From Octopus bimaculoides (lineage: Eukaryota): 33,696 nucleotides of DNA. The notes below the pieces were generated by a model. It did no database searches. It saw only the letters and a list, made by a program, of their open reading frames with translations, and was not told the DNA's origin. The translations under genes and the position numbers were made by a program. The stretch is taken from assembly GCF_001194135.2 (NCBI RefSeq), contig NC_068988.1, positions 39,746,734 through 39,780,429 of the forward strand, read 5' to 3'. Shown here one piece after another: positions 8,204 through 33,696 of the stretch (the stretch's first letter is position 1; each line of letters begins with the position of its first letter).

Positions 8204-8241
<38 letters not shown>

Positions 8242-10446: not shown

Positions 10447-10482
<36 letters not shown>

Positions 10483-10517: not shown

Positions 10518-10753
10518 GAGTGCTTAAGAGATTGCTTCACAAAAATAAGGTCCTTTATTCGATCCCTTTTGTTTGGGATTTTAAGCAAATCTCATTTTGT
10601 ATACTCTTGAATCGAAACGCCTTGCGAATGAACCAGGGTAGACGTAAATACAAAAAGAAACTTCGTTTATAATCGTTTGCTTTTATCATTTATTACGTCA
10701 GCAAGTAACTGTAATTTCTGAGTTCATGCCACTGGCCTACTTGACTTTTATAG

Positions 10754-10771
10754 GAAAAAGAATAAGCGCAG
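10754..10771 (+). CDS. Candidate 18-nt microexon (KKNKR) of an unknown gene
   Basis: TTGACTTTTATAG|GAAAAAGAATAAGCGCAG|GTAAAT. Splice motifs and phase compatibility with 11627-11664 only. Confidence 0.25.
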
Positions 10772-11626
10772 GTAAATGATATATACATACATGTACATAT
10801 GAATATATATTTGGATGCACATTTAAGTTACAGATAATAATTCTCTTCAAGTATAAAACTAAAATACTGTTAACATTATAATTTTCACTCGGTATGGTAG
10901 TTGTTTTTCGAGTCTCATCTTGAAAAAAATTAGAAATGCATTTGTTTCCATGAACTCAGGTCAATAATATGTTTAGACAACCTGACGCAGTAAATGTTGT
11001 ATCTGATAATTCTGTTTTACTTTAATATTCAACCGATGAACCGAGCTTTTAATTTTATTCGTGTCATACAATGCCTCATAAGATAATTAATTTCTAAAGC
11101 TCTCTGATTCAGCAGCCTTGTCGATATATTGGAATAATCATCTTATTCAGAATATATGCCGTTTGTCCAGAAGCGGTTTTTCTAAAATAAAAGAACGTGT
11201 AATTTCACAGTCTGGAATATATTGAATTACCATAAAAGATTAGTGGTGTACTTTCTCTTGTCGTATTTAAATAAAATTAGCATGTAACGTTTATATTTCT
11301 TACGTTGGTTCCATTGATTCCAATAACGTGCATATTAAAGTCACAGATATGAGAAATATGTTAGTCATTCCAGGATAATAATTGCTGCTAGAAATTTAAA
11401 GTAATTATTCTTACATAACATTCTCATTTAACTCATTAAGAATAGGAGCGGATTTTTTCTGTTAAATCTGGTCACCATTTATTCAGCAGCTATATGGTAA
11501 AAAAGCGTTCCGATCCTGATTATCATGATGTTTTTTATAACAGAGATATCACTATTTAATATTCAAGTTTTAAGACTGTGGTTGCTAAGGCGTATTACTT
11601 GGTTTGTTTTGTTTCTACACGTATAG

Positions 11627-11664
11627 CGACTATACAGAGGCTTTTGCTGCATTACATGTAGAAG
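11627..11664 (+). CDS. Candidate 38-nt exon (DYTEAFAALHVE) of an unknown gene
   Basis: Polypyrimidine tract GTTTGTTTTGTTTCTACACGTATAG| and strong donor GAAG|GTATGT; open reading frame. No protein family recognised. Confidence 0.33.
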
Positions 11665-14600
11665 GTATGTTAAATTTTGGAAGATGCAAGATTAAGTTGA
11701 CTATTATAGAAGTTAAGGGTTCGGTGAACCATGTGCCCGAACTTTGTGCGATTCCATTTTGAATGACTTTTGCTTTACGTTCTTTTCCTTATTTAGATGT
11801 TATACCAGTAAATGCTCTTACCTCACCTGATTTTATGTAATTTAAACATATTTGTCAAAGAAATTAGTTCTGAGCAAATTGGTTTTAATGTAATAATCCC
11901 CAATTGCTATAACAGTTCCTTATCAGGATTACATCTTTCTGAATAAGATAGTATATTTATATTTAGACTACGTTAAAGCATGAAGACAAAACTAGATATT
12001 GTTTCCCACTCCCGATCAGTTCTAATCACTCAAACCTGTAATCAGTTCCATCCAGCTACGCAACTTTTTATACTTTGCATATCAAATCTTATATTATCGG
12101 ATGCAAACTATATCCTTACTTTTTAAAGAGGGTTTGTAGTGGTTTGAAAGAGATTTGATTGAAATTTCTACATAATCGAGTGACCATGTAGACACAATGC
12201 CGCTATATGTTCGCATGCATTTTGTAAAATGTGAAGAAAGAGACAGTGCGTTTATAGTTGAACGTTCTTGTTTTCATATGTTGTAGATACCTTGTTATTC
12301 AAGAACTGACAAACAATAGATTGTTATAAATTTTTGAATAAGCACAATTTAAATAACTAACCTGCAGAATCTAACACTAAAATCTTTAGGTCTTTACCGA
12401 TTGAAGCAATATGTCCAAGTCATGGCCTTGGGAATGTAATAATTCTGGGAGTACATACGAGAGACAATTAACCATTTCAATTATCTCAACAATATTAATG
12501 TAGACGTAGGGTCACCGCTGAATTCTACCTTCATGGATAGCAGCTAATATAAATCTAGTAGTTTGTTCCAATAATTTCCAGTCTATAATTTTAGATTTTA
12601 GCATTTATCACAAATCTACACTTGCAGGTATTGAATTCTGGATTGGTACTTATTGCTCTGCTTTTGGCGAGTTGCTTGTTTAGCGTGGCTCGTTATTCGT
12701 ACAATACGGCGTCAATTTGCAGTGAGATAGACGAATCTGTTTGAGCTAGGTCTTTTTTCCTACGGATACCCCGCAGTTCCTGAGAAGCCTCAAACTGCTA
12801 AGTTCTCAATTAAGTTTTCTGTATCTTATCATCTCAGTCATTCAAACACCAGTTTTATACATACCACAGAGCAGACGAAAATGTATAATATAAAATAAAA
12901 AAAGTACCGGCATCATATGATTTTGTAGTGAAGTGTATATACGATTAGTAAATTAAATTGGATCTGGCGAGATAATACAATTATTTCTGGTCGAATATAA
13001 ATTCAGAGAGTAGAGAAGCAGATCACACTACTATAGACATTTTTCTACATCCAAACACTTCAGTTCCTTTACTGTTCTGTATTATATTTAACATTTATAA
13101 TTTAATAAAGTGTACACCAATTTATTTCTGTACATAAAAGAGAGAGAGCTGCTATAACAATAATATAATGTTAATGGCCTGTAATATAATTTAAACGAAA
13201 GTATTCATTCAACCAATATACTAATTGAACAACATATGTGTGCGTAAGTATTTAGTATATGCAGCTGAAACGGAATTAGAATAAACATATATACAACTTT
13301 GAAAGGTATGACACTGGATTTTGTCTGGGAAAATCTTCTTCACACATACTGTGCGTAATATAATACAACACGAGTATGACAAGCAAGACGAACACCGACC
13401 CATATTTACATCATCAGACACATTTTCTTCTTCTTGGGCCGAGTCAGTGACAATCTCTTTTTTTTTTTTTTTTGCCTGTTACATGCCTCGTTGAAATCCT
13501 TTTTCATTTGGTGCTTAGGAAACTGAATAATACATGTAAAATGTCTAGAAAAGCCTGGTGAGTAAATCGAAATTTGGTAGGTCTTCAGTAATCTCAGTTT
13601 CCTATATATATTGAAGGAAATAGATTTCATTTCGTTATGAGACTAGGGAGCTCACGGTATTTAAAAGGACCAAGAAGGCTGAAGGAGGCTGGATGTTCTC
13701 GAGAGTTACCGTTGGGACTATGTTCATCTCGCCCCGATGTTTGCTGTTTCGTAGCACAGCTTTTCTTTGAAGGCTTTTCAGACACACATAGAGCCATACC
13801 TTTCAAAGATGCAATTATGTTAAGTAGGCTCTGTCTGTCTGTCTCTCTGCGTATACGTTTTTAGCTACCCATACTTTCTCCCTTCCTTCCTCTCAAAAGA
13901 ACCACCAAGGAAGCCGAAATATGATTGCTTGGTTCGCTAGAAAATGTCACCAAAACTTTCTCGTATTGACTGCTTAATGGACATGAACAACGGACTGAGT
14001 AATGTAGTCCCAGATACGGTGTTTTAAAAAAAAGAGTAAGGTGGTCATTGATGAAATGCGATTGATTCTATATCTATTCTACCTGTGCGGTCCTTAAGTA
14101 ATATTAAAAACATGCAAATCCCAATTTTACCTTTTATTCTTTACTGTACTCCTTAAACTGATATACTTCTACAACTACACTAGTTTAAGGTATTTTGGAA
14201 ACTATATCTCGTGCCACTTCTAATCAGGCCTTCTGGATATATTTGTCTCTCGTCACACGATATTGTGTATACACACTCAAGTATTGAATAAAAATTTCTC
14301 AGTTCACTCTTCCCAGAAATTCCCCTGCTATCCATGTCTTCCTCGTGGTCGCAGGTTTTGTTCGAGAATAACATGAGCTACATCGTTTTCGTAAATCTAG
14401 GATGACATATTCCTTCACAGCATAGCATTAAAAACAAAATTACTCGTCATCTTAGCGAAATTTTGTTTCAAAAATTAATATTTCATGTTGAAATAGAAAC
14501 AATTTCAACCCTTACAGCAGGTTAAGCAAATTACATAAAAATGAAATAATCTAAGAGGAGAACTACAATGAGACATAGGAATGAACTTCGATAAATAAAT

Positions 14601-16299
14601 TTAAGGAATCATTTACTGAATGAGGTACAGACACAAAATTAGAAAGTTCGCTTAGTGGAGAACTATAACATAAATTTAGCGGCAATTGTTAGAAACTTCT
14701 AAAAGAAAGGGAAGATAATATCAAGAATTTTAAATTAATTTACATGCTATGCTTAGAGGAAAATACTAAAATTATATGTCTTTCCTGAATATATCCTTAT
14801 AGCTGTCTAAAAACTAATTCCGAAATAACTTGTGCGATATATTTTAGTAGGCAGTCATTATTAACATGGGGTGCGATATATGGAAATTTGGCTCCAAATT
14901 GTAGCGGTCGCTTACCGACCTATATTAATAGGCAACAAATTCGATGGCCATGCGTGAAATATTGAGCACAATTTATTTTCTATAGCATGCCGCCGACCAA
15001 TAAATTACGCGTGAAAACTGACGGAGACTGTATAGAAACATGGCGTACAGAGTGTAAGTCAAAGCAGCAGCCTTGACACACTGTATTCCTGAAATTATGC
15101 CTGAGAATTATGTAAAGGTTTCACGACTGTTGAACTCTGGGGTTATTTACGCGTAAATTCAGGAGTGGCTAATTCAGTTGATATCATTATCAAACGACAA
15201 AGTCAGCCATATGGCTGTGGATAACGGAAGTTACAGAACGTAGGACAAAATATTATTTAAATGTTAGTTCAAACAGAGTCAGACTAGAAATAAATATATC
15301 AGTTTGAACAAATCGGTGTTGTAATCGAGTTACGGCACATTAGCAGCTACAAAATATCGAAATAGGTACACATATTTTGTAGTTTAATTCAAAAGTCGTA
15401 CAAAGTCACTTATATAACTAAAAGTACTTTTAGAGAATGACTTGCTAATATTGGTATCTGTAATATAACTTAATGACCTACAACACATGATTTTTTGTTC
15501 ACTGTTGTCTCGCTGTAGATGGCAATGGAGTAATGACAATTGCACCTAATCAAATAATTTCAAAACTAGCACTCGTTTTAGTGGCAAATTTGTTCCCGGG
15601 CTTAGGTTTTCGAAACTTTTTTTTTTACCGAAAAGACAGATCAAATACAATTTTATAGGAAAACAGTTCATAGTCTCGTAAAAATCTCCACATGGGTCAA
15701 AATTGTTTAGTGTACATTTATAGAGTTACTAACGTTAGGAAACCATACACTATAAAAGGTAAGACATGATTATTCATTATTTTTAATTACAAATCTTAAT
15801 TTAAAAATATACCTCATTTTTTTAATTCCTTATAATTCACAAATTTTGCCCAATATAAAATGTTAACCGCAGTAGTTACATATTTTGTTGCTTAATGCAT
15901 AAAAAATTGAGATTTCAGAATCGATAGAGTATCGAGCAAAACATTCCTTCACGACATGAATAGGAACGTTGTCAGAAATGATTCTATTGTTCATTCTTCC
16001 ATGGTCTATATGTGCTAGCCATATACCATATTCGAAATAATCGATTATGCACATATGCAAGTAACGATGAGTGGGTGCATTTTAAAAACGTCAGTTTTAT
16101 CTTAAGCGATTCGACTGATGGAGTACATTATAAATGCATTTGGGTGTTCATATCCAAGAAATAAATTCATCTGAATCAGTTTGGAGTACTTTGCGACCCA
16201 TTACCAGGAGAATTTCCCAGTTTAAGATTTTCAAGATATATGTGATATTTATCACCTCTTTCCAGCAGAAATCTACGATACAATTTAGTTATTTATATA

Positions 16300-16530
16300 T
16301 CACATAATTTCATTTAGGTATCAAAAAAAAGCTCCTGGAATTTTGCCGTGTGCCCAGAAAACTATTTTCAGTCACATATGCGGAAAAATCTGTCATCCTC
16401 ATCTTAAACCTAAGATGTGTTTCAAGGTTGCTAGATTATGTCCAAAACAGAAGTATGAAGACAGATTAACAAAAAATAATCTTTTGGAATTAGCATATTC
16501 AGAAGTGCAATCTTAAACATGTGCCAGATT
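16300..16530 (+). mobile_element. Possible hAT (SPIN/EPM2AIP1-like) transposase C-terminal relic
   Basis: Across frameshifts: LLEFCRVPRKLF...KQKYEDRLTKNNLLELA, resembling LLEFY...KxKYRxRLT. Weak, judged by eye. Confidence 0.35.
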
Positions 16531-17072
16531 CACACAGTTTCTTCTTTTAGGTTTTGTTCAACTTTTGTTTGGCTACTCCGTTTATTTGCTAAATTAAAAA
16601 AAAAATTAAAATATTTATTTTAATATTTATTTCGACTGACAGTATGTTTTAGAAATGTGTGTGTGTGTACATCTGTGTATACACACACAATGCGGAAAAT
16701 GTATGAACATCTGATGCACGGCATTTGCAATTATTCGCTTACCTTCAGTAATTAAAAAGCATAATCTGAAAAATACTTGAGTTTAAACTAATCGATGAAG
16801 CAGATATTTTTAAAAGCAGAAATTAAAACAGAAGTGAAAAATGTTTAGAGTTAAATATTGATTTCTATTTTTTAAACTATTTATGATGCTTTGAAATGGG
16901 TGGCTAAGTTTTTGAGCAGTTAATTTTTCGTGAAAAGTAGACACCATTGATAGAGATAATGAGATGGACAAAAGTTTAAACAGTTGCAAAATTATAGAAG
17001 ATGGCTGGGTATCAGGTTTTTCCGAAATCGGTTATATTATATAAAGAGAGCAGTTTACAAATTTTCGAAGAT

Positions 17073-17312
17073 TTAGGGTGTAGTTCACATGCGCATTAGA
17101 TCGTGGTTTCGATCACCGGAGTTGGCGGTGGGGTGTGTTCATGAGCAAATCAATTGCTTTCACTTTGCTTTTCAGTCCACTCAGACGTTGTTTCGGAGTG
17201 GAACCCTGTTCAAAGGAGTTGTCGTGATCTCGTAACTTACACACCATGGAAACCGGATAGCCAGACCTGTTAGTCTTAGGACACTACAGTAATGTCCAAA
17301 TGGATAGGAGTA
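17073..17312 (+). mobile_element. tRNA-derived SINE (family 3), head truncated, inside arm A
   Basis: GATCGTGGTTTCGATCACCGG (B-box-like), GTGTTCATGAGCAAA, CAGTCCACTCAG, CCATGGAAACCGG; matches 30128-30385 on the minus strand. Confidence 0.75.
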
Positions 17313-18291
17313 ATAAAGAATAATTATAGAATTACGGTTGGAGAGCATGACTTCGGTGATTATAATTTTTATATCATTTTAGACCTTTATCATAGTGATT
17401 TCGAAATTTAATTACAGTTGCTGGTACGAATTCGAGAATTTTTTTTTTTGTATTCAACTTTTTAAATGATGCAAGTTTTGAAGAACAAGTGATATATTCG
17501 GTATGCATAAGCTTTGTTGAAATTTATAGTAAACAAATATTTGATCTGTTTAAATTCCAGTTTAAAAACAACTACAACAGAAACCCCTGAAACAGACGAG
17601 AAAATACTTCTATGAAAGGTTAATAGTATCTTTAGTGTTGCGCAGAACTTCCGATCTGATATAAATATGTGCATATTTATTTCGATTGTCCATTTGTATT
17701 TTGAAAAAGATTTGTCTACACGTATATAATGCATATTGAATATGGATTTTCATGTCATGCTTGAAATTTAAATAAGTGCATATTTAGTTCATTACAAACT
17801 ACAAATGAACGAAATATATATATACACATTAATATAGCTGCATGTATATATACACACACTCAGGAATACGTAACAATGCATGTATTTACTGTATGCTTTG
17901 CGCATTAGATTGTTGATGTCTACACTACATTTTCATTGCTCAGTGGCATGCATATTTTCTATAACCAGATCATAAACAATATATTTTCATCGGTTCTGTG
18001 TTAGATCGACAAACACAGTACAATATTTATATGATATGCAATAGAATTATTAATTCCACACTAGAAATACATTTTAATCTTATATAAAACACTCAGATTA
18101 AATAGAGCGGAGGTGACAAATATTAGTGCTTAGGTTTTTCAGTACAATTAATTGAATATTTGCTGTAAAATAAAGCATTCTGCTTTAAGTTTTACTTCAA
18201 GCTAAAACGTTAATTTTAAGCGAGTTGATTATATAATGTATAGAATCTGCACTAGACTGTTAATGGTATTAATTTTGTGTTATTTGTTTAG

Positions 18292-18338
18292 AACTCATCG
18301 ACAACGAGACTCACTTCGTTACTATTGCACTAATGTAA
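18292..18338 (+). CDS. Candidate terminal exon (ELIDNETHFVTIALM* in phase 1, or NSSTTRLTSLLLH* in phase 0)
   Basis: Acceptor TTTTGTGTTATTTGTTTAG| is kept in arm B (29055-29054, minus); AATAAA at 18497-18502 is kept at 28868-28873 (minus). Confidence 0.27.
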
Positions 18339-18789
18339 AGACTGTAGTGTCCTGTAACGATGATTTTAAAATATTGTAGGCTGTCTATATAGCTAGGCGA
18401 TAACTCATACAGACTTAGAACAATTAATGGGCTACATATTGTTGGCATTTAGAATTATACAAATATGAAAGAATTAAGTGTGGGCTAGTGTAAAATAATA
18501 AATGACAGCAAATTCAATATATATGATGCTATTTATTTTCTATAATAATATTTTAAAGAACAAATTTCCCTGATAGAATTAACTATATAACTAATATGTT
18601 ACTTTCGCCTCAAACTCTTAACAGAAGAAATTAAACCAATATACACCACTACGCAAAATGTGTGTAGATTTATGGACACACTCTCAAATTCAAAATTACT
18701 CATAAACAATCGGACACAGATCTACCGAATCATGGACATACGCATTAATACTGTACGACACGTCACATAAACACATACAGGCGTATATA

Positions 18790-18898
18790 TTTTTCAGAGC
18801 CAGAGAGTGTTTGTTTGCGTGTGTGCTTGCGTGCGTGTGTGTATGTGTGTGTGTGTGTGTGTNNNNNNNNNNGTTTGCGTGTGTGCTTGCGTGCGTGT

Positions 18899-18930
<32 letters not shown>

Positions 18931-19016
18931 CTGTGTGTGTGCGTGCGTGTGTGTGTGTGTCTGTGTGTATGTGTGTGGCTGTGTGTATGTGTGTGTGTGT
19001 GCGTGCATGTGCGTGT
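18790..19016. repeat. Imperfect (TG)n/(TGCG)n microsatellite spanning a 10-N gap
   Basis: Seen directly. Confidence 0.93.
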
Positions 19017-19089
19017 TCAATTATGAACCAAGTATTCTTATCAATTATCATTGAATGGTTTCCGATTGCAAATTAATGCGATCACTTGC

Positions 19090-19740
19090 CCAGAAATATA
19101 GAAGTAAACATTGAGTTCTCTGTTGATCTGATTTGCAATCTTTGTATGTCGTTTCATAAGAACTTTCCTCTCCCTAGGAATCTTGTTCTTATGTGAAGTG
19201 GCCTTTCTCTCTGGAACTAACTTGTAGCATATAGCTTACATTACGGATATGAATACTTTGTCGGTGTCAGGTTCTGAGATATTGGGACCAATCCTGTTTG
19301 ATCTTTCTCAATTGATTTCCATTCTGCTTCGTGGAAGTTTAGATTGGATAGATTTTGGGTGCTTCTCGTAGGCTGCATGTATGCAGATTCCTTTGGTCCG
19401 TACGTGGTCACTTTCATGATATGGATGAGATCCATATTGTTTGTGAAGCAGACATCAAGTGTATTGTTTGCAGTGGTTGGTTGGAGTATTACTTGTTCCA
19501 AATATAAATTGTTGGTGAGGTTGAGATTGGATTCCACCTGAATTTGCTCACATTGCGCCATTCCTAAGAGAAAAAGGCATTGAGTCCATTCTAGATTTCG
19601 CAGGCTGAAATCTATGAGAAGTACAATGTTGTTCTAGTTTGGTTAAGGTTTCTATTTTTGTAAGGTAGTGTTCAAATAAGCCCGTGTGATTTGGAGCACC
19701 TGGTGGGCAATAAGGGTACATATAACGAAATCTAGTTGTG
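19090..19740 (-). mobile_element. CR1/L2-group LINE fragment (AP endonuclease C-half and linker)
   Basis: YCPPGAP (YRPP), IVLLIDFSL.NLEW (ILLGDFNL), LEQVILQPTTANNTLDVCFTNN (PTRxxNxLDLxFTN), NLNFHEAEW, NKIPRERKVLMKR. Confidence 0.85.
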
Positions 19741-22700
19741 TTATATGTACAATTAGTCACATAGTGAGTTTGAGTGTGACAAAAGGAGCTACGTGTATCC
19801 TTTACATATGTAAGAGCGTGAGAGCGTTAAACTTTTACGGCAAGCAATTTATGAGATGCGTCACAAAATTGGTTCCTATTTATAACTAAAAAAAGTTTCT
19901 CTTCAATAATGTTTTTCTAATTCTGCATTATTTCAATTACTAATGCTGCCCTACCGAAGCATGGTTTGAACATTAGGACTTCAAATTTCCAATTTCATGC
20001 GGTTCTGAAGAATTGCTTTTATATAATGAGAACAATAAGAAATACAAATGAATTTTAAAACAGCATTTCGCTGTGAAACACAAGTCAAATATTGTAACGT
20101 TTATATAGAGTGACTAAGTTTAACATACTTATAAAGATTATAATCTGCTTATGGAATCTATACCTAGCTGTTCTTCTTTAGTTGCTGTCTTCTTTGAAAC
20201 TCTTTGTTATAGTCAATGTGTTCAGTACGACAAAACGAAAATACAAATCAAAGAATCAAATATACCCCTCGTCCTATGATACTACCAATCACTTAATACA
20301 CAAAGAAAGAGTTAGCCAACAGTGAAACGAACAATTATATATAAATTTTAAAATTATCGAATTACCCTACAAATAGCTGAATTGATGAATAGAAAATATA
20401 AAAGGGATTTATATTCTGTATAGATCATTAGAATCAACTTAAAAATAAAGTTAATACACTGATCAATAACATTTCACTCGATTCATGACCTTACTCATAA
20501 TATATAGATCTAATTAGTGAATAGCACAGTAGAAAGTCCAAAGGGAAAATATGAAATAATTAGTGTAATCATTAAAATTTTAGCGCATTAGCGAAAATAC
20601 AAAAGTAGATATATTGAAGATTTCAAAATATATAATTATCCTATAATGAAATAATATCACCCGATTAGTAAATAATTTAGCGGTCCCTTGCATCAATATA
20701 ACCATGCATAATGATTCCGTCATGACTAATTCAACAAATATAATGATGCTATACTTCGCTGATTACGTCTAATATTGCCTAAACACATCTTAACGAAATG
20801 GTTGCAATAATGCTAGTTATTGAGCTTAAGTTCTCTCCCTAGTATTTCTAATTAGATTTTGTTTGCATTAAATATTTTCACTCTACTTATTTCTCGATAT
20901 AAAAGGGCTGAAATCTCAAAATCAGAAAATACTTTCATATTAATGAGTTTATTCATTTAAAAAGGTTCAGACAACAACATAAATGTTATAGATTGGAGAC
21001 CTTTAGAGTTATCAAAATTATTCAATAAAAGATCACAATATAAATGATACTATTTAATATGAAAGGAATTATCATTTACCATATAAATAAATTTTACAAT
21101 TAAGATCTTCTCCTATACATGCTCATCGAACTAGGAAATATCTTTCAGGCAATAATTGATGTCTAACATCAGAATGTGTGCGAATTAAACGAAAATTAAA
21201 ATAGAGTTTGAGGATGAAAAATACAAAAGATGAATCTGCAATTTAAAATTTATTTCTAAGAGATTATAGTGATAATAGAAAATATACTGCAAATATCGGA
21301 CAAAACGTTCATAATTAAATTTCTTATGGTTTATCTCTGTTAAAACGTAATATTTGTTACGGTAGATTCAAGGCGATCTTTTCCACCTAAAAAATGTAAT
21401 CTAATTTGATATTTTGTACCGTCATACACTTTATAGCATATTAATTTTACACCATCTGTTTTGAATATGAATACATACTTCCTCCTGAATTTAATCATGT
21501 TTTCAACCTATTATCAGAAATATATGAACTTATTACAGTAGCTGAATACTAGATAAAAAGGAATAGCAAAAATACTCAGCTTATAATTTTCCGCTGGATT
21601 TTTATGTTTATCGAATCAATATATTCAATTATAACGAGAATCATTGAATAAGTAATTTTTTCCTATAATAAAACAATAATTCTACTTTTCCGTCAATAGA
21701 ATTCACATCACTTAAACTGCTATTCATCTTAAAATCGTACACTATTGCACTGCTGCCTTGCCAAAATATACTACTATTATATTATAGAAGATTAAAATCA
21801 ATCACGTATAATCAAACAGTCGCCCTTACATAAGATTGTGAAGGCTCATGACCTACAGGTTAGAACATTGAAGTCATCCTCAATAAGTTACGGGGTTGAA
21901 GGCGCGGAAACCGGGATGATGTCCATGCTGCTCACGATTTCTCAGGAATAGAAAAAGATTAGCATTTGCATGGTAAATAATTTTGTCATTCCTGCCTGCG
22001 AGTGGCAGCTGTAGTTTTATAGCACATAACAATAAAAGCTGATTCTTCTCAGTATGCATTTGGGTTATCTTGATCCACCACTCGTAACCACTTACTATTG
22101 GAAATACAATGAATGTAATGAGAAATACAAGAAAATTCAAATAGGTGTGAATTGAAAAATAACCGATTACAATTTTTAATAGCAACAAAATTCTACACTT
22201 TAAAAAATGCTATTACCATTGTATACATTTTTTTCTTATATATTTAGATACGTATTTTGCGTATTTTCGCGCAAATTAATATGTTACTCGATTCATAAAT
22301 GTATATTTTCAGAAAATATTGGCTACTTTATCGTTCCTTGTTACATGATTTATCAACTGAGATAAAAAATAAGAAACGAAAAGCAGACTATGTGAAGTAA
22401 ATCGGTTAGAATCTAGAGATTAGAAGTGTACATCATACGAAAAGAGACCACAACTTTCAAACCAGAGGAATTCTTTTTCTGACAAAAAGAATATTTTTAT
22501 TTTTCGGAGATGGGAGAGTTTTAACTGAAAAGACGAACAATTTATCGACTTCTACTATTAATCTTTTATTGAAAAAGGAAACAGGAACACAGCTTGCTGT
22601 CAAAATGTACTCCACTGTATTAGTTGTATTTATAATCTAAGATACCTTTTTCAGGGTAACTGTTTCACAGAAGTATACACATGTATTTACCCATTAAATT

Positions 22701-23549
22701 ATAGTTATTAAATGTATACGGGCCAACAAAAGCCGCTAAGTCGCTGTTCAACCTGCAAGAAATAAGCCAAATTGTTGCCAAGAAACAGTCTACCACTTTA
22801 CACAAAGATATATTTCATGATGTGATCCCAGATAGGCTTTTCTTAATAGACCAAATAGATGGGACGACTACAACATGAATATCTTCCATCATAGGTTTTC
22901 TATCACAAGAATGACTAGGAAAAAATACAGGTATCTAAGAGTATATCAAATGGCTATTCTATATTAATTTTTGATGCAACAAACACCATTCAAATGCAAT
23001 ATCGTCGACCAAAAGTAAAAATAAGCAGTTATGACGCATTATGTGACACAGAAATCTATGCATTTTTGTGTTACTAAAAATCGAATGGGAAACCAGAATG
23101 AAAGAGCATATTTAGGACATCGATGTTCGAACATACTTGATGCACACGATGAAATCGTAAGAATAAAATGTTCAGTTCCTAATATGCATTGATCATGAGT
23201 AAAATACACACCATTGAAAAATGCAATATAACTTGAAGAATAATTGTCAAATATACAGAATCTTTGAAACGCCTAGTTTAGAATAGAGGCAGCTGACGAA
23301 GGAAAAATTCCATAAGTGGCTCGTCTGTTTTCCTATGGGTTCGCTCTGTTGTCTGTAAACAAAGTCCGTTTTTGTGCGTTTTGTTCCCGTTTATTTTTCT
23401 GACGTCCTGTACCCGGATATGCATCTATATATACATGTAGATGTAGGTATGTACATATATGTATGTATACGTGCATATACTCATATATCATTTGTATTAT
23501 ATATATATATATATATATGCACACATATGCATATATATATTCTTTTTTT

Positions 23550-24071
23550 CTTTTACTGGTTTCAGTCGTTTGACTGTGGCCATGCTGGAGCACCGCCTTT
23601 AGTCGAACGAATCAACCCCAGGACTTATTCTTTGTAAGCCTAGTACTTATTCTATCAGTATTTTATGTCGAACCACTAAGTTACAGGGACGTAAACACGC
23701 CAGCGTCGGTTGTCAAACGTTGGTGGGGGACAAACAGCGACACACAAANNNNNNNNNNNNNNNNNNNNNNNNNNNNNNNNNNNNNNNNNNNNNNNNNNNN
23801 NNNNNNNNNNNNNNNNNNNNNNNNNNNNNNNNNNNNNNNNNNNNNNNNNNNNNNNNNNNNNNNNNNNNNNNNNNNNNNNNNNNNNNNNNNNNNNNNTATA
23901 TATATTTACGACGGGCTTTTTTCAGTTTCCGTCTACCAAATCCACTCACAAGAGTTTGGTCGGCCCGAGGCTATAGTAGAAGACACATGCCCAAAGTGCC
24001 ACGCAGTGAAACGGAACCCGGAACCATGTTGTTGAGAAGCAAGCGTTTTACCACACTAACACGCCCACGCC
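23550..24071 (-). mobile_element. Family 1 SINE, well-preserved copy; internal microsatellite is an N gap
   Basis: TTTCAGTCGTTTGACTGTGGCCATGCTGGAGCACCGCC...GTAAACACGCCAGCGTCGGTTGTC...[N]...ACGACGGGCTT...CCAAATCCACTCACAAG...GGAACCCGGAACCATG...CACGCC; same layout as 1781-2293. Confidence 0.92.
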
Positions 24072-24088
24072 GATACAGATAAGAAGCA

Positions 24089-24335
24089 GTTTCAATTCCA
24101 CTGTAATGCACCTTGGCCAATTATCTACCATATCCTCTGGCATGTCAATACGCCACGAGTGAATTAGATAGACGGGAACCGTGTGGAATCCCGTCGTGTG
24201 TCAGTGACAACAGTACTGTTGTACAGCACTATGGTTCAACTAATATGTTCGACCAAATAAATACCAATTGAGACACTGGAACGCAAAGTGAGCAGCGTAG
24301 CCTCAGTCCAACGACAGGAACAGGTAAAAAAAAAA
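24089..24335 (+). mobile_element. Older, diverged family 1-like SINE, inverted relative to the neighbouring copy
   Basis: TTCAATTCCACTG...GCACCTTGGCCAA...GAGTGAATTAGATAGACGGGAAC...CCCGTCGT and a tail ...GGAACAGGTAAAAA. Confidence 0.7.
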
Positions 24336-24799
24336 CAGAAAGATCAACTTCATTTTTCATAACAACCCACGTATTCCAGAAACTAAGGAATTCTCAGATC
24401 TCTTTAGTTTAAATTTATGTACATTTTTATTCAAGCGAAAACACCGGTCAACAATGTAAATATTATTTGGAAACAATTTGTGACAAAGTAAAATACACCG
24501 CTATCCTAAACTACCAAATTGATGAGTAGAAACATGTTGTCACACTAAAATTAAGTTTCCCCCAAAACAAGATTTAATCGAAAAATGGAATTGAGTTGCT
24601 GACCAATTAGAGAAATTCGATAAAAAAGATTTTCTCGGAAATTGGATGCATCAATATCAAGAGTTAGCTCTCCCTGATCGCCCACATATTCACGATGATT
24701 TGTAGCAATATTAATAGTCCCAATATAATCTGAAAGTATGAATACTGCTCATTATTATTCAGCTAGCAGTCAAGTGCTATTACACACGGTATCTGTTCA

Positions 24800-25400
24800 T
24801 TGCTGAAGCTTACAACATAAAGATGAATTTTCACAAATACGTCTTCAGTCATGTCTCTCCACGAGGGACACAGCTGAAAAGTTAATACCAGAGCAGTTAC
24901 ATTATAAGACACAATGTACATTGCTGATATATTTTGATGAGAGAACACACTAACGATAGATAAAATATTAAGTAGGTCGTATTCAGTGTAAATGTATACG
25001 AGGACTCAGTGAATTTGAAAGACACCTTGCCTTCACTGAATCCTTCAGAAGTTACGAAACAATACAGGTGTTTGTGAACTATTAGCTCTGAGAAAGGTAT
25101 AAGAATAAAAAGGTTTACGTTATTTGAACTAATTTCAGATACTTTTAATGACTCTATCATGGAGCTTGTACCTACAGAGAGTGACCTGAAGAGAGATTAG
25201 ATATTTTAATTTGTTTTTTAGTACAAAATGTATATCAGAAGCAAGTAAAATAAATCAATTCGATAATCTTGACAGACTGGTTTATCCATGTTCACAGCTT
25301 GTAATAATTTGAAAGTGAGATGGATAAAGTTGGATCAAGAAATACAGTTTAAAAAATGTGTTACATGTATTAGTGTGTGAATTACGACACTGTAAAATAG
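24800..25400 (+). mobile_element. Possible hAT transposase relic (C-terminal half)
   Basis: In order: SLQHKD...EKL...QL (LQGK...KL...QL), LSEFERH (EFxRRF), IMELV...SDLK (QMELIELQSD), LSMF (LSMFGSTY); many stops and frameshifts. Confidence 0.45.
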
Positions 25401-26079
25401 ATAATGCATTTACTCCGTTCTTTCTATATCTGCAATATTGTCTTGACAGCAGTCTTGATTGAAATGTGGTGTGTAAAATCATTATAAAATGTTTTAGGAA
25501 CACAGTTTCTAAGATTATGATGGTCGACTATTTCCTCTCTGCCGTGTTATTACTAGTGATGTAGGTCAACCATGCAGAATCTCGTGAATGAAAGTGTTGT
25601 TTAAACGAAGGATAGGAGACAAAATTAAGAAAATTATATAAGGTGAAACATCTTAGTTTTCTGGCTCTATATCTTTGGTAGACATATCCTGGCAAGTGTA
25701 ATTTAGATAGGAATGGCTAATTTTCGATGAGGTATTAAAATAGTTATTGTAGTAAATCGGGTTTGTATACAATGTATGATGCTAAGAACTACGCCTAAAT
25801 AAAAAAAATACATGGTACTAACAATTATGGTTGGACACTTAGCCAGAATGTAAGAAAGAAAAACTGCAAATCAATTACTTTGTGAATATTGACATACAAG
25901 CAAAACAACAGATGGTTGATAATCAACGTTGAATTGCTCGTACGTGGATTAATCGGGAAATCAGTAAAAACTATTAAATGAAACTAACTTCAAGTGATTT
26001 TTATACTGACGACCCCTTAATATTTGGAAGATACTATAGGACAGCAAATCGTGTTTAGAAAAGAATTTATTATACAGTG

Positions 26080-26450
26080 AAGACGCAAAAATGGCTAAGT
26101 AATTTAGAATGAGATACATAACTGCTACATCACCTACTAGATGATAGAAGGAAGTGTTGGACAGGTTCAATGTTATCTTGAATTTCAGATTAGACGAAGT
26201 TTTTTTTATTAAGACTTCTCTTATGTGAAAGTACACTTGGTGCAGAAGGAGAGATTAGAATAAGATCTAACTTATGTTTTCAAACAGGCACAACAAAAGA
26301 TCAGTAATCTGGATAAGACATTTTGGAACTGAGAACTTGGAGAAATACAAAATTCACGGACTAAATGGTATCAGTGTATGGATTCATACGCCCAGCAAGA
26401 AAATACTCAGCCAGGAGTGGACAACAAAGTAAAAACTGTTATAAGCTCGT
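26080..26450 (+). mobile_element. Possible decayed RTE-like LINE RT fragment
   Basis: KEVLDRF...GAEGEIRIR...LRTWRNTK...YGFIRPA..Y resembles ExVxxFxYLGS...EIxxRI...IW...LYG. Confidence 0.4.
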
Positions 26451-26644
26451 AGAAAAAACAAACATTACTTAGAAAGACACCGTCATCGTTGTTCGTTATC
26501 AATCACCAAATCATAGACCCATTACTTCGATGCAGAAATTACACCTCTCACACACAACGCCAATCCACCACGCTTGTGTGTGTATGTCCATGTGTGTGCA
26601 TGTAATTATGTATGTATGTGGGTGAGTGTAAGTGCATATGTGTA

Positions 26645-26838
26645 TGTGTATGTGTGTGTGTACCACCACCGCTACATAACCGGTGTAGGTGTGTTTAAGT
26701 TCCCGTAACATAGCGGTTCAGCAAAAGAACCTATAGAATAATTACTAGGCTTAAGAAAACGTGCTGGGGACGATCCTTTCGACTGAGGGGGTACCCCAAC
26801 ATGGCCGAAGTCTAATGATTGAAACAAGTAAGAAAGAA
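26645..26838 (+). mobile_element. 3' half of a family 1 SINE flanked by microsatellites
   Basis: GTGTTTAAGTTCCCGTAACATAGCGGTTCAGCAAAAGA...TACTAGGCTT...CATGGCCGAAGTCTAATGATTGAAACAAGTAAG is the reverse complement of the tail at 23550-23748. Confidence 0.85.
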
Positions 26839-26878
26839 TCCACACAGTCAGACACACACACATTTTTATGCACATACG

Positions 26879-26925
<47 letters not shown>

Positions 26926-27499
26926 TATGCACGATGAAGAAGCCACACGTGAGTATATTTTTTCTGTAATATATATTTTAAGAATTATGAAAATGATAAT
27001 TAGAAGAAAGACTGTGGTAGATATTTTTACCATCTAAAGGGGAAAAAATTAACAATCGGTGTGACTAGAAACCAATCAAATTGGGAAGTGAAAATGTTAA
27101 TGTTTTAACAAGCAGAATTTATGTACCAGGCTGAAATTCGTTATATTTCTGACAATTTATTTGACGTTTTTGTTTCGCTTGGTCAGAGTTTCTTAAAATG
27201 AAAGAAATGTAATGGGAAACATCAAGACATTTATGTAACTAAACATAGATTTTAATAGTAAATGTTACTCGCAAACTGAGTTTGTGAACTTGTTTCAGCT
27301 TTCAACTATACTAAAAAACATGAAAATAAACGAAAGATTAAATTATAATTATTTGCCTTCTCACTTATCACCACGACCTAACGAAGGAGCTCCTATTTGG
27401 TTACTTGACATGCTAGATATAGAAGTTACGTAGTCCTAAATATATTTTTAATAAACGAAAGGATTATTAAATGAATTTTTTCCTATATTATACGCGAAA

Positions 27500-27850
27500 A
27501 AACCTTGACATGCTCCGAGCTAGAACTAAACAACAGTAACACATGGCAAGTTGTCCAGAAACTGATTATCACTTATGTTTTTCTTTTTGACATATATGCA
27601 CCCATAATCACAATATTAATTTCTTGGCGTTAAATACTTGTTGTGATTTCTGCTAGAAGGTAGTTTTGATTTAATGAAAATGATTTCTAAAATTCATATG
27701 AGTGTATCTACCATCGTGAAGAATTATTACTGAAGTTTCTTGTAGCTTTGCACAAGTCTTTCTGGCTCAATGCCATTTACATGGTAAGCTTCTTCAGCGA
27801 ATTTTAGGTTGACGTCTGTTAAATCAGTTTCATAAACAGAAAAATCTTAC
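27500..27850 (-). mobile_element. Possible hAT transposase relic
   Basis: DFSVYETDL...KKLQ*, then YEF*KS (EFWKS) and VIMGAYM (FGSTY-like) in the expected order. Weak. Confidence 0.33.
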
Positions 27851-28737
27851 TAAAATATGGAAAAAGCTTATCAAAATCTAACAAATTGGTCAGATGAAAA
27901 TGTTAAGGAACGATAAAAAATTGAGTTATTATATTGATTCCTGTAAATCTAAATCTATTGTGAGAGATTTGGTAACTGTAAAAAAGCTTCAGTGATATAT
28001 AAATGTAGTTTATAATTAATTATATAAGGAGAGAATAAAGGAATAAAATATATGAAAATTATTTCAAAAATGATGCTATAAGATTGAATAGGACGCAGAG
28101 ACTAGAATTCGGCTGCATGCATTTGCTGCTGAGGTTCAGCTCAGTTATATTTGACGTAGCTAATGAAAAATGTTGCAGTTGTTTTGCGTGTTTGTAAATA
28201 ATTTGTCCAATGAGAAAAGTTTGTAAAATAATGTGATAGATTTTTGCTTTGGTAATATATTTCAAATAATTCGGCCAGGAATATGAAATAAGGAACTCTC
28301 CTCTTTGTCAATTTCTTTATATCCAATCAAATTTTGGAATCCCTCAAATTATACAATGTAAGATGAATAATTACATTCAGCTGTTTGTATCTCCTCGACA
28401 AGTGGCTTTGGAGGTAGTTTGGTTGCAGTTATTCTCCACGAATGGTGAATTCTTATTAGGGGTACGACAAAGACCATGAGGTCTCTAGATCTTAAAAAGT
28501 TGTAGACGTGGTAGAATCTGGAATTACTGCTCATCTGATGGTATCCATGTTATTGTGGTCAATCTCATCCGTTGATCTAGTTCATAATGTGACTACATCT
28601 GTTTTGCCAGTCATACCACACGGCTAGTATAAATATATGGCACATAGTAACCATGGACATAATTGTCCTTGGTTTTAAGAAGACAATCCTGACAATGAGA
28701 TCCTGGGTGTGAATCTACATTACCCTAGTGAGATCCC

Positions 28738-30850
28738 TTTAATATTTTTCCATTTAGTGTTTGGAGCGAAAGTGATATATTAGATACGCAGTTAACTGTA
28801 TCGTGGAAATGAAGGTTCTTTAAAATATAGAAAATAAATATCACAATATATTTTTAACTTACAGTCATTTATTACTTTAGCGTACAATCCTTTCATATAT
28901 GTAACCCATTGATTGTTTTATGCCTGTGTGAGGTATCGCGTAGCTATATAGGTAGCCTACAATATTTTAGAATTATCGTTATAGGATGCTATAGTCTTTA
29001 CATCAGTGCAATAGAACTAAAATAAGATCAATCAGTCCCGATGTCGATGTGTTCTAAAACAAATCAATACTATTAAAATTCTAGTGTAGATTCTATTCGT
29101 TATATAATCAACTCGGCAAAATTTATGTTCCGCTTTGAAGTAAATGTAAAGTAGAATTCTGTAATTTATTGCAAATATTCAATTAATTGTGCTGCAAAAC
29201 CTAAGCACTAATCATATTTGTCTACTCGGCTCCATTTAACCAGAGAGTTTATATAAGATGAAAATGTATTTCTAGTATTGGATTAATAATTCCATCACAT
29301 AATTACTGCGTTGTGCCTATCAGTCTAACACAAAGCCGATGAAAACAAATTATTTATGATCTGGCTAGGAATAACAGGGATACCGCTGGAGCAACGAAAA
29401 TGAGGTGCAGACAAAACATGTAATGTGCAAAACATATAGTGAATACATGCATTATTACGTATCCCTTTGTGTGTATATACATATTTCTATATGTATTTAT
29501 GTACTTATATACATTTCGTTCATTTGTAGTTTGCACTGGAGCTAAACATGTATTTGTTTAAATTTCCAGTGTTTGAATTCGCACTTAATAGCAAGACATG
29601 AAAATCCATATTCAATTAGAATTACACGTTTGTAAGCATAAGGTATATTCGAAAAAAAAAAAAAGAGAAAAAAGTCAGAAAATCAAAAGAAACGGACAAT
29701 CGAAATGATGGACTACGGAAATAGGATTATATTTAAATCATCAGAAGGAGTTCTGTAATACAAACAAAAGATACTATTTATTTTTCACATATGCATTTCC
29801 TTGTCTGTCAAGTCCAAGTTTAAAGGGGTTGCGTTTCATTTTTCGATTGAGAATTTCTAGCAGATCAAATGTATGTCCGTTTTCAATTTCAACAAAGTTG
29901 AATATTTAACGTGTTTTACAAAAACTGCATAATCTATGAAGGTTGAATGAAAGGACTTCTGGAATTCGTATCAGAAACTGTAATAAAAATTCAATATCAT
30001 TATAATAAAGGTCTAAAATTAAATAAAGATTACAATCATCGGAGTTATACGTTTCAACAGTTCCACCGTATTATTCACTTATTAAACAATAGTACAAGAA
30101 TGATCAACATTCACCAGATCGTGTAATGCTATTCCTATTCATTTGGACATTATTCCATTGTCCCAAGATTCACAGTTCTAGCTTTCCGGTTTCCATTGTG
30201 TAAAAGTGACCAAGATCACAACAACTCCTTTTGAACGGTCATTCATTCAAATCTTAGTTGACTGGAAGCATAGTGAAAGGAATTGTTTTGCTCAAGAACG
30301 CAATGCACTGCCAAATCCGGTGAGCGAAACCACGATCTAATGAACACGAGGGCTGCAACCCTAACGTCTAGGCCACACTCCTTCACTCCTGAACATTTAG
30401 TCGCATATTTACCATATATTTACTTTTTCTACCTCTTTTGGCCATCTCCGCAAATTTGTATAAATTGTTCTCTTTATATAATAAAACCGATTTCTGAAAA
30501 AACCGGATACCTAACCCTCTTCTGTAACTTTGCAACATTTTTAACATTTGTACATCTCATTACCTTTATCAATGGTGTCTACTTTTCACAAAACATTTAA
30601 CTGCATAAAAACTTAGCTACCCATTTCAGAGCATCATAAATAGTTTAAAGAATAAAAATCAATATTTAACTCTAAACATTTTTACTTCTGTTTTAATTTC
30701 TACTTTTAAAAATATCTGCTTCATCGATTATTTTAAACTCGAGTACTTCTTCAGATTGTAGTTCTTAATTCCTGAAGGTAAAATGCCGTGCATCAGATGT
30801 CCTTCGTACATTATCCGCATTGTGTATGTATATACAGATACACACACAAG
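28738..30850 (-). repeat. Arm B of the ~2-kb inverted duplication (partner 16650-18635)
   Basis: Same anchors as arm A; weak similarity may extend to ~31030/16500. Confidence 0.95.
30128..30385 (-). mobile_element. Family 3 SINE with intact tRNA-like head, inside arm B
   Basis: Minus strand GGAGTGTGGCCTAGACGTTAGGG (A-box-like)...GGTTTCGCTCACCGG (B-box-like)...TTCTTGAGCAAAAC...ATGGAAACCGG. Confidence 0.78.
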
Positions 30851-30873
30851 CACACACGCACACATACACACAC

Positions 30874-30911
<38 letters not shown>

Positions 30912-31237
30912 GCAAATAGATAGATAGACATAGGTTGACGTACACAGGGGAACGGAGTTGAAAACTTCATTGCTTTGCGTAAAAGAAAATAAAGGAGGAG
31001 CAGCTGATTAAGATTTTATTCAATATACTCCCGNNNNNNNNNNNNNNNNNNNNNNNNNNNNNNNNNNNNNNNNNNNNNNNNNNNNNNNNNNNNNNNNNNN
31101 NNNNNNNNNNNNNNNNNNNNNNNNNNNNNNNNNNNNNNNNNNNNNNNNNNNNNNNNNNNNNNNNNNNNNNNNNNNNNNNNNNNNNNNNNNNNNNNNNGTG
31201 TGCTTGTGTGTGTGTGTGTGTGTGTGTGTGCTTGCGT

Positions 31238-31291
<54 letters not shown>

Positions 31292-33515: not shown

Positions 33516-33696
33516 AAGACTGGCTGTGTGGTAAATAGCTTGTTTACTAACCACATGGTTCCGGGTTCAGTCCTACTACATGGCACCTTGGGCAAGTGTC
33601 TTCTACTATAGCCTCAGGTCGACCAGGGACTTGTGAGTGAATTTAGTAGAGGGAAACGGAAAGACGTCCGTCGTATATATATATATATATATATAT
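33516..33696 (+). mobile_element. Family 1 SINE head and core, running off the window end in (AT)n
   Basis: TGGCTGTGTGGTAAATAGCTTG...CCACATGGTTCCGGGTTCAGTCC...GGCACCTTGGGCAAGTGTCTTCTACTATAGCCTC...CCGTCGTATATAT. Confidence 0.92.

Follow-up and report, generated by a model that had tools for sequence, protein, structure and literature searches.

A hidden inverted repeat in Octopus bimaculoides as the probable scar of an old inversion within a kinesin-6 pseudogene

A stretch of 33,696 nucleotides from Octopus bimaculoides, referred to here as the window, carries two ~2-kb segments that face each other in opposite orientation across ~10 kb of other sequence. The locus raises the question of how these two arms arose, and whether the sequence between them still lies in its original direction.

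Limits and divergence of the inverted duplication

Self-BLAST of the window aligned the left arm with the reverse complement of the right arm as two collinear inverted HSPs, and a separate repeat search of the window returned identical collinear blocks. The outer HSP pairs 16656-17072 with 30856-30444 (84.5% identity, 427 columns, E=6e-130), and the inner HSP pairs 17094-18635 with 30342-28738 (68.7% with gaps counted, 1695 columns, E=0). The features of the repeat are as follows:

16656 to 18635, plus strand: left arm, consisting of intron, one kinesin-6 exon relic and then intron
28738 to 30856, minus strand: right arm, matching the left arm when reverse-complemented (16656-18635 against 30856-28738)
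18636 to 28737, no strand: spacer of 10,102 nt, including 158 N and ~60 redundant nt
16672 to 17072, plus strand: low-divergence outer block, with its partner at 30444-30840
18807 to 19016, plus strand: interrupted (TG)n repeat in the spacer, 170 nt from the left junction, containing a spurious 10-N gap
18636 to 30856: putative inverted segment (spacer plus right arm), ~12.2 kb
18635/18636 and 30856/30857: novel junctions of the putative inversion

These limits lie within 6 nt of those given in an initial annotation of the window. Its by-eye estimate was roughly 70-85% identity with many indels; in a global alignment the arms agreed at 79.0% of 1868 aligned sites (K2P 0.25) and differed by 37 indels, 9 of them with lengths divisible by 3. 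The exact 16-28-nt anchors that it described are collinear, as claimed, but the alignment contains 14 such runs and not five. The local alignment score of the arms was 741, compared with 17.2 ± 1.3 for shuffles. With (TG)n set aside, all pairings of the flanks, in either orientation, were shuffle-like, showing no homology beyond the arm ends, and self-BLAST found no third copy of the arm sequence in the 33.7-kb window. The (CA)-rich end previously noted as shared corresponds to microsatellite at the arm ends, (TG)n on the left (16657-16670) and (AC)n on the right (30840-30909). Tracts related to the (TG)n tract at 18807-19016 occur at 30840-30909 and 31198-31289.

Divergence between the arms is uneven. 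The outer block, which terminates at an 80-nt indel, has a K2P of 0.11 as compared with 0.27-0.29 elsewhere, and is likely to be a gene-conversion tract; the contrast (0.11 vs. 0.29) obliges the inversion account given below to assume gene conversion in addition. A segment next to the outer block (17094-17290 and 30342-30150) had been called a shared SINE. It is indeed shared, but its identity as a SINE was not borne out: ARAGORN found no tRNA in it, Rfam gave no match even at E<=10, and self-BLAST detected no further copies in the window. It may belong to a SINE family absent from the libraries used.

Relics of a kinesin-6 gene inside and outside the arms

The window was searched for gene relics with a kinesin-6 HMM and by tblastn with 27 full-length proteins; the highest null scores were 25.8 bits when the window was reversed and 23.5-31.2 bits over 40 shuffled versions. 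The relics recovered, in window order, were:

15550 to 15766, plus strand: pre-P-loop and P-loop relic exon(s), in unduplicated sequence to the left of the left arm
16319 to 16513, plus strand: relic exon with GILPR and the start of loop 6 (KKAPGILPCAQKTIFSHICGK…LKPKMCF…), in the same unduplicated sequence
17418 to 17618, plus strand: left-arm exon relic, reading …YSVCISFVEIYSKQIFDLF…
22055 to 22111, minus strand: candidate switch-I exon relic in the spacer (HCISNSKWLRVVDQDNPNA compared with HCIFNIKIIRVIDKDNPHA)
27733 to 27840, minus strand: probable relic of the exon after YIKG (DLTDVNLKFAEEAYHV…), in the spacer, at a distance of 0.9 kb from the right arm
29782 to 29977, minus strand: right-arm exon relic, reading …FVEIENGHTFDLLEILNRKMKRNPFKLGLDRQGNAYVKN

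To the left of the duplication, the HMM matched 15680-15763 (E=4e-7; 36.6 bits vs. a null maximum of 25.8-31.2) and 16325-16504 (E=1e-8). The first of these relics has RVTNVRKP in place of the kinesin-6 motif GVTNSGKT and contains two frameshifts, at ~15620 and ~15685. Within the duplication, the same kinesin-6 exon and its flanking intron have decayed in both arms, and the disabling lesions differ between the copies. The left-arm relic retains an acceptor AG (17416-17417) and a donor GT (17619-17620), and is interrupted by an in-frame TGA (17588-17590) and a 12-nt deletion. The right-arm relic, recognized by the HMM on the minus strand (E=2e-8), carries a TAA stop in frame (~29907-29905) and a frameshift, has lost ~9 nt, and has its donor changed from GT to AT. 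Both arms are non-coding today and, with its ruined P-loop, its frameshifts and stops in both arm exons, the kinesin-6 gene is a pseudogene.

On the Pfam Kinesin profile the left-arm frame alone scored 19.1 bits (E=7e-4), and addition of the portion open only in the right arm raised this to 24.1 bits (E=2e-5, profile positions 101-165). The combined arm exon aligned with KIF20A over 49 residues without a gap (E=1e-5). In many animals KIF20 exon ORFs end in …GNPY(I/V)KG, and the donor site of the arms lies at exactly that point. A conceptual splice of the relics, judged against the curated Pfam Kinesin cut-off of 29.3 bits, scored 56 bits with plus-strand pieces only and, once the right-arm and 27.8-kb pieces were added, 64 bits (E=1e-17), the match then reaching profile position 179. 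KIF20A was the best match of this chain (E=3e-23), with alignment extending through …YVKN/DLTDVNLKFAEEAYHV, and annotated molluscan KIF20A/B proteins were the closest full-length relatives; the nearest contigs found share only 33 nt, which are exonic. The chain keeps the kinesin-6 (KIF20A/MKLP2, KIF20B) signatures GQNCLV.Y.VTN, GILP…FNSI…LKP and DLLE…KR..L.L.ED.NGNPYVK. Unlike a working kinesin-6, the relic gene is apparently split by rearrangement, and its motor is recognizable over only ~220 residues. By these sequence comparisons the relic gene is a kinesin-6 of the KIF20A/B type.

The two spacer relics are short and weak. The switch-I candidate (22111-22055) scored 31.6 bits on the kinesin-6 HMM, a value reached by none of the 40 shuffled windows, the best of which scored 31.2. 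The piece at 27733-27840, probably the exon that followed the arm exon, scored 23.5 bits alone, which is within noise; it nonetheless lengthens the chain alignment, to which a control ORF and the 13.6-kb ORF added nothing. Neither relic was detected individually with Pfam, whose general Kinesin model did not pick up the 22.1-kb piece. Exons past switch I were found nowhere in the window.

A probable inversion breakpoint and the competing explanations

The left arm adjoins only 5′ exons of the one dead gene, and the right arm only its 3′ exons; in the window, no copies of 5′ exons were found to the right of the right arm, and no copies of 3′ exons on the plus strand to the right of the left arm. 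When the segment 18636-30856 is turned back, all relics fall on a single strand in protein order. The spacer therefore appears inverted relative to the 5′ half of the gene, although support for this is only moderate because both of its relics are weak. We consider it reasonably probable (roughly 60%) that an old ~12-kb inversion divided the kinesin-6 gene and left the arms as its duplicated breakpoint. Two short relics in the spacer, at 22.1 kb and 27.8 kb, carry the argument for an inversion.

Such an event would have begun with a gene on the plus strand in the order P-loop exon, GILPR exon, arm exon, post-YIKG exon and switch-I exon. A first break, staggered by ~2 kb around the arm exon, would have reached from a (TG)n tract in the intron before this exon to a point ~1 kb into the intron after it, with a second break ~10 kb further downstream. 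Fill-in and rejoining would have flipped the intervening segment and left opposed 2-kb copies at its ends, giving A-B-(D′..C′)-B′-E. Both copies would then have decayed neutrally, with the outer 0.4 kb probably homogenized later by gene conversion. A two-step route, in which an inverted duplication came first and recombination between its copies then flipped the spacer, would be equivalent and is not distinguishable here.

The arms sit on different contigs (7514-18862, left; 23897-31033, right), so that their relative orientation rests on the joins at 18863-18872 and 23749-23896, both of which are gaps outside the arms. The main rival, possible although unlikely, is that the block comprising 18873-23748 and 23897-31033 is mis-oriented by scaffolding; the arms would then be a direct, near-tandem 2-kb duplication of one exon, and the pseudogene would be collinear. 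Small mis-oriented blocks are frequent in short-read scaffolds, tandem duplication is the commonest kind, two gaps lie between the contigs of the two arms, and flipping the block likewise yields a collinear exon order. The joins themselves favor the present layout. The gap at 18863-18872 is spurious, because the preceding 50 nt are exactly repeated after it; this distinctively interrupted overlap is the sole one among all pairings of contig ends, and neither join of the flipped layout has any. Its support is not unique, since the (TG)n variant recurs with at most five mismatches at 31218-31230, placing a near-copy of the microsatellite behind this join at the start of the last contig. The second gap falls in a composite repeat, within its internal microsatellite; the halves of this repeat flank the gap in the same order and on the same strand as in the intact copy at 1781-2294, and so bridge it collinearly. 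A tandem layout would furthermore leave at least 400 nt of unrelated sequence between the copies, and the sequence after the first copy (18636 onward) has no homology to that after the second.

Another alternative is that a 2-kb gene fragment was simply duplicated nearby in inverted orientation and the spacer never flipped, the minus-strand matches being due to chance and the 3′ part of the gene deleted or outside the window. The weakness of the spacer relics (23.5 and 31.6 bits vs. null maxima up to 31.2), which Pfam does not detect individually, speaks for this account. We regard it as improbable, as the strand, interval and order of both pieces are those predicted, their protein positions come directly after the arm exon, the 27.8-kb piece extends the Pfam and KIF20A alignments of the chain where the two comparison ORFs do not, and no 3′ exons were found on the plus strand. 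Of the three origins originally proposed, none is correct as worded, and tail-to-tail paralogues came closest: the arms are paralogous copies, but of one exon and not of two genes.

The geometry of 2-kb inverted termini with ~10 kb between them recalls long-TIR elements, and the window is rich in TE debris. The two further origins proposed, long TIRs of a ~14-kb foldback-type element and paired insertions of a composite repeat, are both very unlikely, as are the variants in which the element is Maverick-like or a dispersed repeat once captured a kinesin exon. No TSD was found at the ends of the putative element or of single arms, as the flanks (…TTTAGAAA before (TG)n and GCGCAAATAG after (CA)n) have no common direct repeat, a test weakened by age and by the microsatellites. 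The 147 frames of arms and spacer, scanned singly, gave the kinesin frame and weak matches to Exo_endo_phos_2 (E=0.0096) and DUF645 (E=0.0092), with no transposase, integrase, polymerase, RT or capsid domain, and the spacer appears to carry host-gene exons. Independent insertions do not explain why the two arms run on into different halves of a single host gene, and the 33.7 kb contain no third copy. A foldback, long-TIR or Maverick/Polinton element is not supported, with neither TSD nor element-encoded proteins or remnants found, and neither is a composite repeat.

A transcript through both arms had been expected to form a ~2-kb imperfect duplex. In the predicted fold, the outer block and its partner (16672-17072 and 30444-30840) do pair well, with 360 of 401 nt paired, helices of up to 49 bp and a dG of -472 kcal/mol vs. 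-93 ± 7 for shuffles, but the remaining 1.5 kb is only ~72% paired, with many bulges and 226 gap columns. As modeled, a dsRNA or ADAR substrate is physically possible, only in part. That selection and not gene conversion has kept the outer 0.4 kb, with the pseudogene transcribed through both arms and the hairpin used, is very improbable; if true, the hairpin would be a source of endogenous small RNA or a hyper-edited dsRNA, and the locus an inversion-born hairpin-RNA locus in a lophotrochozoan. Hairpin-RNA and endo-siRNA loci and long-range ADAR substrates are likewise inverted duplicates of gene fragments that can fold if co-transcribed. They differ from the octopus locus, whose arms lie 13-14 kb apart and in which only the intron-derived 0.4 kb pairs well, the exon part being ~70% matched.

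A probable genome scar of an ordinary kind and its meaning

At 17 of 29 inversions in Drosophila, stretches of unique sequence, often partial genes, were found as inverted duplicates (Ranz et al. 2007, PLoS Biol 5:e152, PMC1885836). In most cases only one breakpoint carried the duplication, of up to ~1.9 kb, and substitutions and small deletions accumulated as the copies decayed (PMC1885836). An inversion by staggered breaks in the octopus would share these properties: inverted copies of putatively once unique sequence would bracket the flipped segment, a partial gene is duplicated, one of two breakpoints would be involved, and decay has proceeded in the same manner. The ~2.0-kb arm stands at the top of the Drosophila range (up to ~1.9 kb aligned; PMC1885836). 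Apart from the taxon, the octopus case differs in that ~12 kb within one gene would be inverted, as opposed to a cytologically visible inversion between species (PMC1885836), in that polarity is deduced from pseudogene exon order and not from an outgroup, and in the greater age of the copies (79% vs. ~88% identity).

NAHR inversions, such as human polymorphic ones (PMC3961182), resemble the locus in that an inverted pair flanks an invertible spacer, and conversion between arms could explain the outer block. In those cases the repeats were present before the inversion and share high identity (PMC3961182), whereas here they are 79% identical and a single event would explain both duplication and inversion. 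The initial annotation had also remarked that the arms could invert the spacer. Of its remarks this one comes nearest, in that the spacer does appear inverted relative to the 5′ half of the gene, but recurrent flipping today is unlikely at 79% identity, with no exact run longer than 28 nt.

There is no indication of a function today, and the scar has no evident functional consequence. Its practical implications concern annotation and assembly: the kinesin-6 pseudogene could be mistaken for exons, the 10-N gap is spurious and accompanied by 50 duplicated bases, and the orientation of scaffold block 18873-31033 hinges on long-read confirmation.

Taken together, these data indicate that a puzzling hidden inverted repeat is most likely a known and ordinary kind of genome scar, explained by a known mechanism. 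They also provide a rule for reading other hidden repeats, which is to seek a host gene whose halves adjoin different arms. If the assembly is right, this locus would be a kilobase-scale, intragenic case, outside Drosophila, in which the breakpoint duplication left by an inversion preserves the polarity of the event with no need of an outgroup.

Extent of the inverted pair and the joins behind it

Self-BLAST of the window recovered two collinear inverted matches, 16656-17072 against 30856-30444 (84.5% identity, E=6e-130) and 17094-18635 against 30342-28738 (68.7% including gaps, E=0), and a repeat search of the window returned identical blocks. In a global alignment of the left arm (16656-18635, +) with the right arm (28738-30856, -), 1868 sites were aligned at 79.0% identity (K2P 0.25), with 14 exact runs of 16-28 nt and 37 indels, only 9 of which were multiples of three. 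The local alignment score was 741, compared with 17.2 ± 1.3 in shuffles, and the inverted duplication proposed in the initial annotation is real. Self-BLAST detected no third arm copy in the window, and flanks beyond the arm ends, compared in every pairing and orientation, gave shuffle-level scores once (TG)n was set aside.

The assembly gaps within range of the pair (18863-18872 and 23749-23896) both fall outside the arms. The left arm lies on contig 7514-18862 and the right arm on contig 23897-31033; their relative orientation therefore rests on the joins at these two gaps. The first (10 N) is spurious, as the 50 nt preceding it are exactly duplicated after it, which graph-adjacent contigs would give. 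When all contig ends were paired in every orientation, no other exact end overlap emerged. The second gap falls at the position that the internal microsatellite occupies in an intact composite repeat (1781-1896, microsatellite, 2118-2294), and the gap flanks align to both halves of that repeat with order and strand preserved. Both joins thus have internal sequence support, with some caution remaining for the first because its (TG)n variant recurs at 31218-31230 with at most 5 mismatches.

The artefact at 18813-18922 comprises ~60 redundant positions, and the 60-nt "period" reported by TRF at 18807-19015 is partly due to the duplicated 50 nt and the gap. Further gaps outside the pair, at 7029-7513 (485 N) and 31034-31197 (164 N), are both edged by (CA)n/(TG)n; the latter parts the outer flank of the right arm from the last contig, at a join without sequence support.

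Other elements in the window
1781-2294 (+); 23550-24069 (+, split by gap 23749-23896); 26645-26838 (-); 33526-33685 (-): composite SINE-like repeat
4930-5495 (+): putative reverse-transcriptase-like remnant, recognized by eye ('…YSRYVDDINIA…'), Pfam giving no supporting match
9385-10343 (+): Mariner/IS630-type transposase remnant in several frames (Transposase_1, E=5.7e-4; HTH_Tnp_IS630, E=4.6e-3; both under curated Pfam cut-offs)
19244-19633 (-): 130-codon open frame with a weak Exo_endo_phos_2 match (E=0.0096, below cut-off)

In the composite repeat, a microsatellite separates the first half ('…tttgactgtggccatgctgg…') from the second. Four or more copies, complete or partial, occur in the window with 70-82% identity, and the family has no tRNA or Rfam match. 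The 130-codon frame lies ~0.6 kb inside the left junction; Exo_endo_phos_2 is the endonuclease of non-LTR retrotransposons. The window contains no tRNA, and its only matches to known RNA families were microsatellite-driven miRNA hits far under gathering scores.

A kinesin-6 exon in each arm and relics around it

Relics of a kinesin-6 (KIF20-type) pseudogene were mapped by tblastn and a profile HMM, both derived from full-length kinesin-6 proteins. The nearest of these are molluscan (Sinanodonta, 41.6% identity; Ruditapes KIF20A/B), followed by nemertean and sea star proteins.

Kinesin-6 relics
15550-15766 (+): pre-P-loop and P-loop, 'GQNCLVYIYRVTNVRKPYTIKG', two frameshifts (HMM E=4e-7)
16325-16504 (+): GILPR/loop-6, 'APGILPCAQKTIFSHICGK…LKPKMCF' (HMM E=1e-8)
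17480-17578 (+): arm exon, left arm (E=8e-7); lesions, TGA at 17588-17590 and a 12-nt deletion
29899-29780 (-): arm exon, right arm (E=2e-8); lesions, TAA at ~29906, a frameshift, a ~9-nt deletion and loss of the donor
27840-27733 (-): 27.8-kb spacer relic, 'DLTDVNLKFAEEAYHV…' (23.5 bits)
22111-22055 (-): 22.1-kb spacer relic, 'HCISNSKWLRVVDQDNPNA' versus 'HCIFNIKIIRVIDKDNPHA' (31.6 bits)

The reversed window reached at most 25.8 bits and 40 shuffled windows 23.5-31.2 bits, with 0/40 at or above 31.6. On the basis of these controls we grade the first four relics as solid, the 22.1-kb relic as marginal by score and the 27.8-kb relic as within noise. Both weak spacer relics have the strand, interval, order and protein positions of pieces directly after the arm exon. 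A chain of the + strand pieces alone scored 56 bits against Pfam Kinesin (cut-off 29.3); once the right-arm and 27.8-kb pieces were included, it scored 64 bits and the alignment reached profile position 179, while a control ORF placed in the chain gave no gain. The spliced chain matched KIF20A at E=3e-23, continuously across '…YVKN/DLTDVNLKFAEEAYHV'. Single relic ORFs had no Pfam match, and the relics show only by family-specific comparison or in the chain. A switch II-like ORF at 13619-13831(+) would have broken the protein order; it was rejected as noise-level, with no kinesin match alone and no chain gain over the control. Kinesin-like segments at 752-606, 25031-24903 and 31859-31750 are also noise-level and are not claimed.

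Pfam searches of concatenated open frames were empty; these are ~10 bits less sensitive than a single-frame scan, and the search was rerun frame by frame. The only lead in arms and spacer was frame 17399-17587(+), matching Kinesin profile positions 101-145 at E=7e-4, which is borderline given the ~440 frames tested. The right arm is interrupted upstream at the homologous place and is open where the left arm has its stop and deletion. When the left-only and right-only open parts were joined, the Kinesin score was 24.1 bits (E=2e-5, profile 101-165), compared with 19.1 bits for the whole left frame and 16.9 bits for the left part alone in the same run; against KIF20A the joined frame aligned over 49 residues without gaps (E=1e-5). 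The start of the left frame is not a 'GIIPR' motif, as initially read; GILPR proper belongs to the separate relic at 16325-16504.

Exon boundaries were referenced to animal KIF20 exon ORFs (loci L001-L011), which occur in public metagenome assemblies as sequences of host origin. Exon-sized KIF20 ORFs from many animals, found by profile search, all terminate in '…GNPY(I/V)KG' followed by intron read-through, and this end coincides with the donor in the arms (left AAAG/GTTAAT, right AAAA/ATAAAT). Because the exon ORF ends match the arm donor position, each arm is, on this comparison, an upstream intron, one kinesin-6 exon and a downstream intron. Both exon copies are dead, through different lesions. 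In the search for a parent locus, the closest exon ORFs (P0019 and P0022) are 50-58% identical and lie on short host-derived contigs with just 33 nt of exon in common with the window. One of the reference ORFs was found on at least 24 metagenome contigs; the reference loci likewise match the window over no more than those 33 nt. As to copy number, neither of two exact anchors of 25-28 nt matched any metagenome contig. Against protein collections, the left-arm frame concatenation had no match, not even to itself, a result that carries no information on copy number, and the left exon frame alone gave no candidate; exact look-ups of four window ORFs returned nothing on record.

Divergence of the arms and predicted pairing

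The outer 0.4 kb of the arms (16672-17072 / 30444-30840) is 2.5 times less diverged than the remainder (K2P 0.11 vs. 0.27-0.29). This block is intron-derived, shows no open frame common to both arms and stops at an 80-nt indel; we infer later gene conversion, halted by the 80-nt heterology, although selection or a conserved non-coding function may, less probably, account for it. The exon region (60-73% identity per 100 columns) is no better kept than its surroundings, and neither copy has therefore been under coding constraint since duplication. Assuming that neutral sites change at a few 1e-9 per site per year, K ~0.29 would very roughly translate into tens of millions of years. At the 80-nt indel (17071 / 30444-30365) the left arm lacks the 5′ edge of a segment initially annotated as a SINE, together with upstream sequence; this segment therefore predates the duplication and was not inserted twice.

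A ~2-kb imperfect duplex had also been envisaged as an ADAR substrate. In a transcript reaching from one arm to the other, nearly all of the outer block would be base-paired (360/401 nt, -472 kcal/mol against -93 ± 7 in shuffles, with helices of up to 49 bp), while the other 1.5 kb is predicted to be only ~72% paired, with 226 gap columns; such a duplex would be physically possible only in part. The pairing partners are 13-14 kb apart, a distance that, judged by the editing of Alu pairs, disfavours pairing. There are shorter-range competitors close by, among them (AC)n at 30840-30909 with (TG)n at 31205-31289, an inverted pair that is 81-86% complementary and ~286 nt apart across a gap.

A probable inversion with a duplicated breakpoint

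On the + strand, the 5′ half of the pseudogene leads into the left arm; its continuation extends leftwards on the minus strand from the right arm into the spacer, where the relics are weak. In frame scans and the kinesin-6 search of the window, 5′ exon copies were absent from the sequence to the right of the right arm, and the + strand showed no 3′ exons to the right of the left arm. When 18636-30856 is conceptually re-inverted, the relics all share one strand and follow the order of the protein. This complementary exon pattern would be the signature of an inversion with its breakpoint segment duplicated in inverted orientation, a reading to which we assign a probability of roughly 0.6. The same end state would also arise if the segment were first duplicated in inverted orientation and its two copies then recombined.

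Flank comparisons found no second (distal) breakpoint duplication; one candidate, the left-inner flank against the inverted right-outer flank (26 vs. 16 ± 1.5), was rejected, its signal being wholly (TG)n. Interrupted (TG)n/(CA)n tracts (16657-16670, 18807-19016, 30840-30909 and 31198-31289) lie at or near every rearrangement junction, three of the four sharing a 'GTGCTTG(C/T)GTG' interruption. They may have been the fragile sites of the rearrangement; they also render contig joins there ambiguous.

Alternatively, a scaffold block could be mis-oriented, the arms then being a near-tandem direct duplication within a collinear pseudogene. The 50-nt overlap, the composite repeat bridging the second gap and the absence of homology after the two copies argue against this, and we consider it unlikely. 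An inverted duplication without inversion would make chance matches of both spacer relics, the marginal and the noise-level one, and seems less likely still. A transposon or composite repeat, as in the foldback and composite-repeat options of the initial annotation, is highly improbable: there is no target-site duplication outside the arms, no element protein in arms or spacer and no third copy in the window, and each arm adjoins a different half of one host gene.

In Drosophila, inverted duplications were reported at 17/29 inversions and explained by staggered breaks; mostly one breakpoint was duplicated, with aligned lengths up to ~1.9 kb, and the copies were often decayed partial genes (Ranz et al. 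2007, PMC1885836). The octopus arms share with these duplications the complementary pattern around a probably inverted segment. Conditional on scaffold orientation, the inverted pair would probably be explained by a known mechanism.
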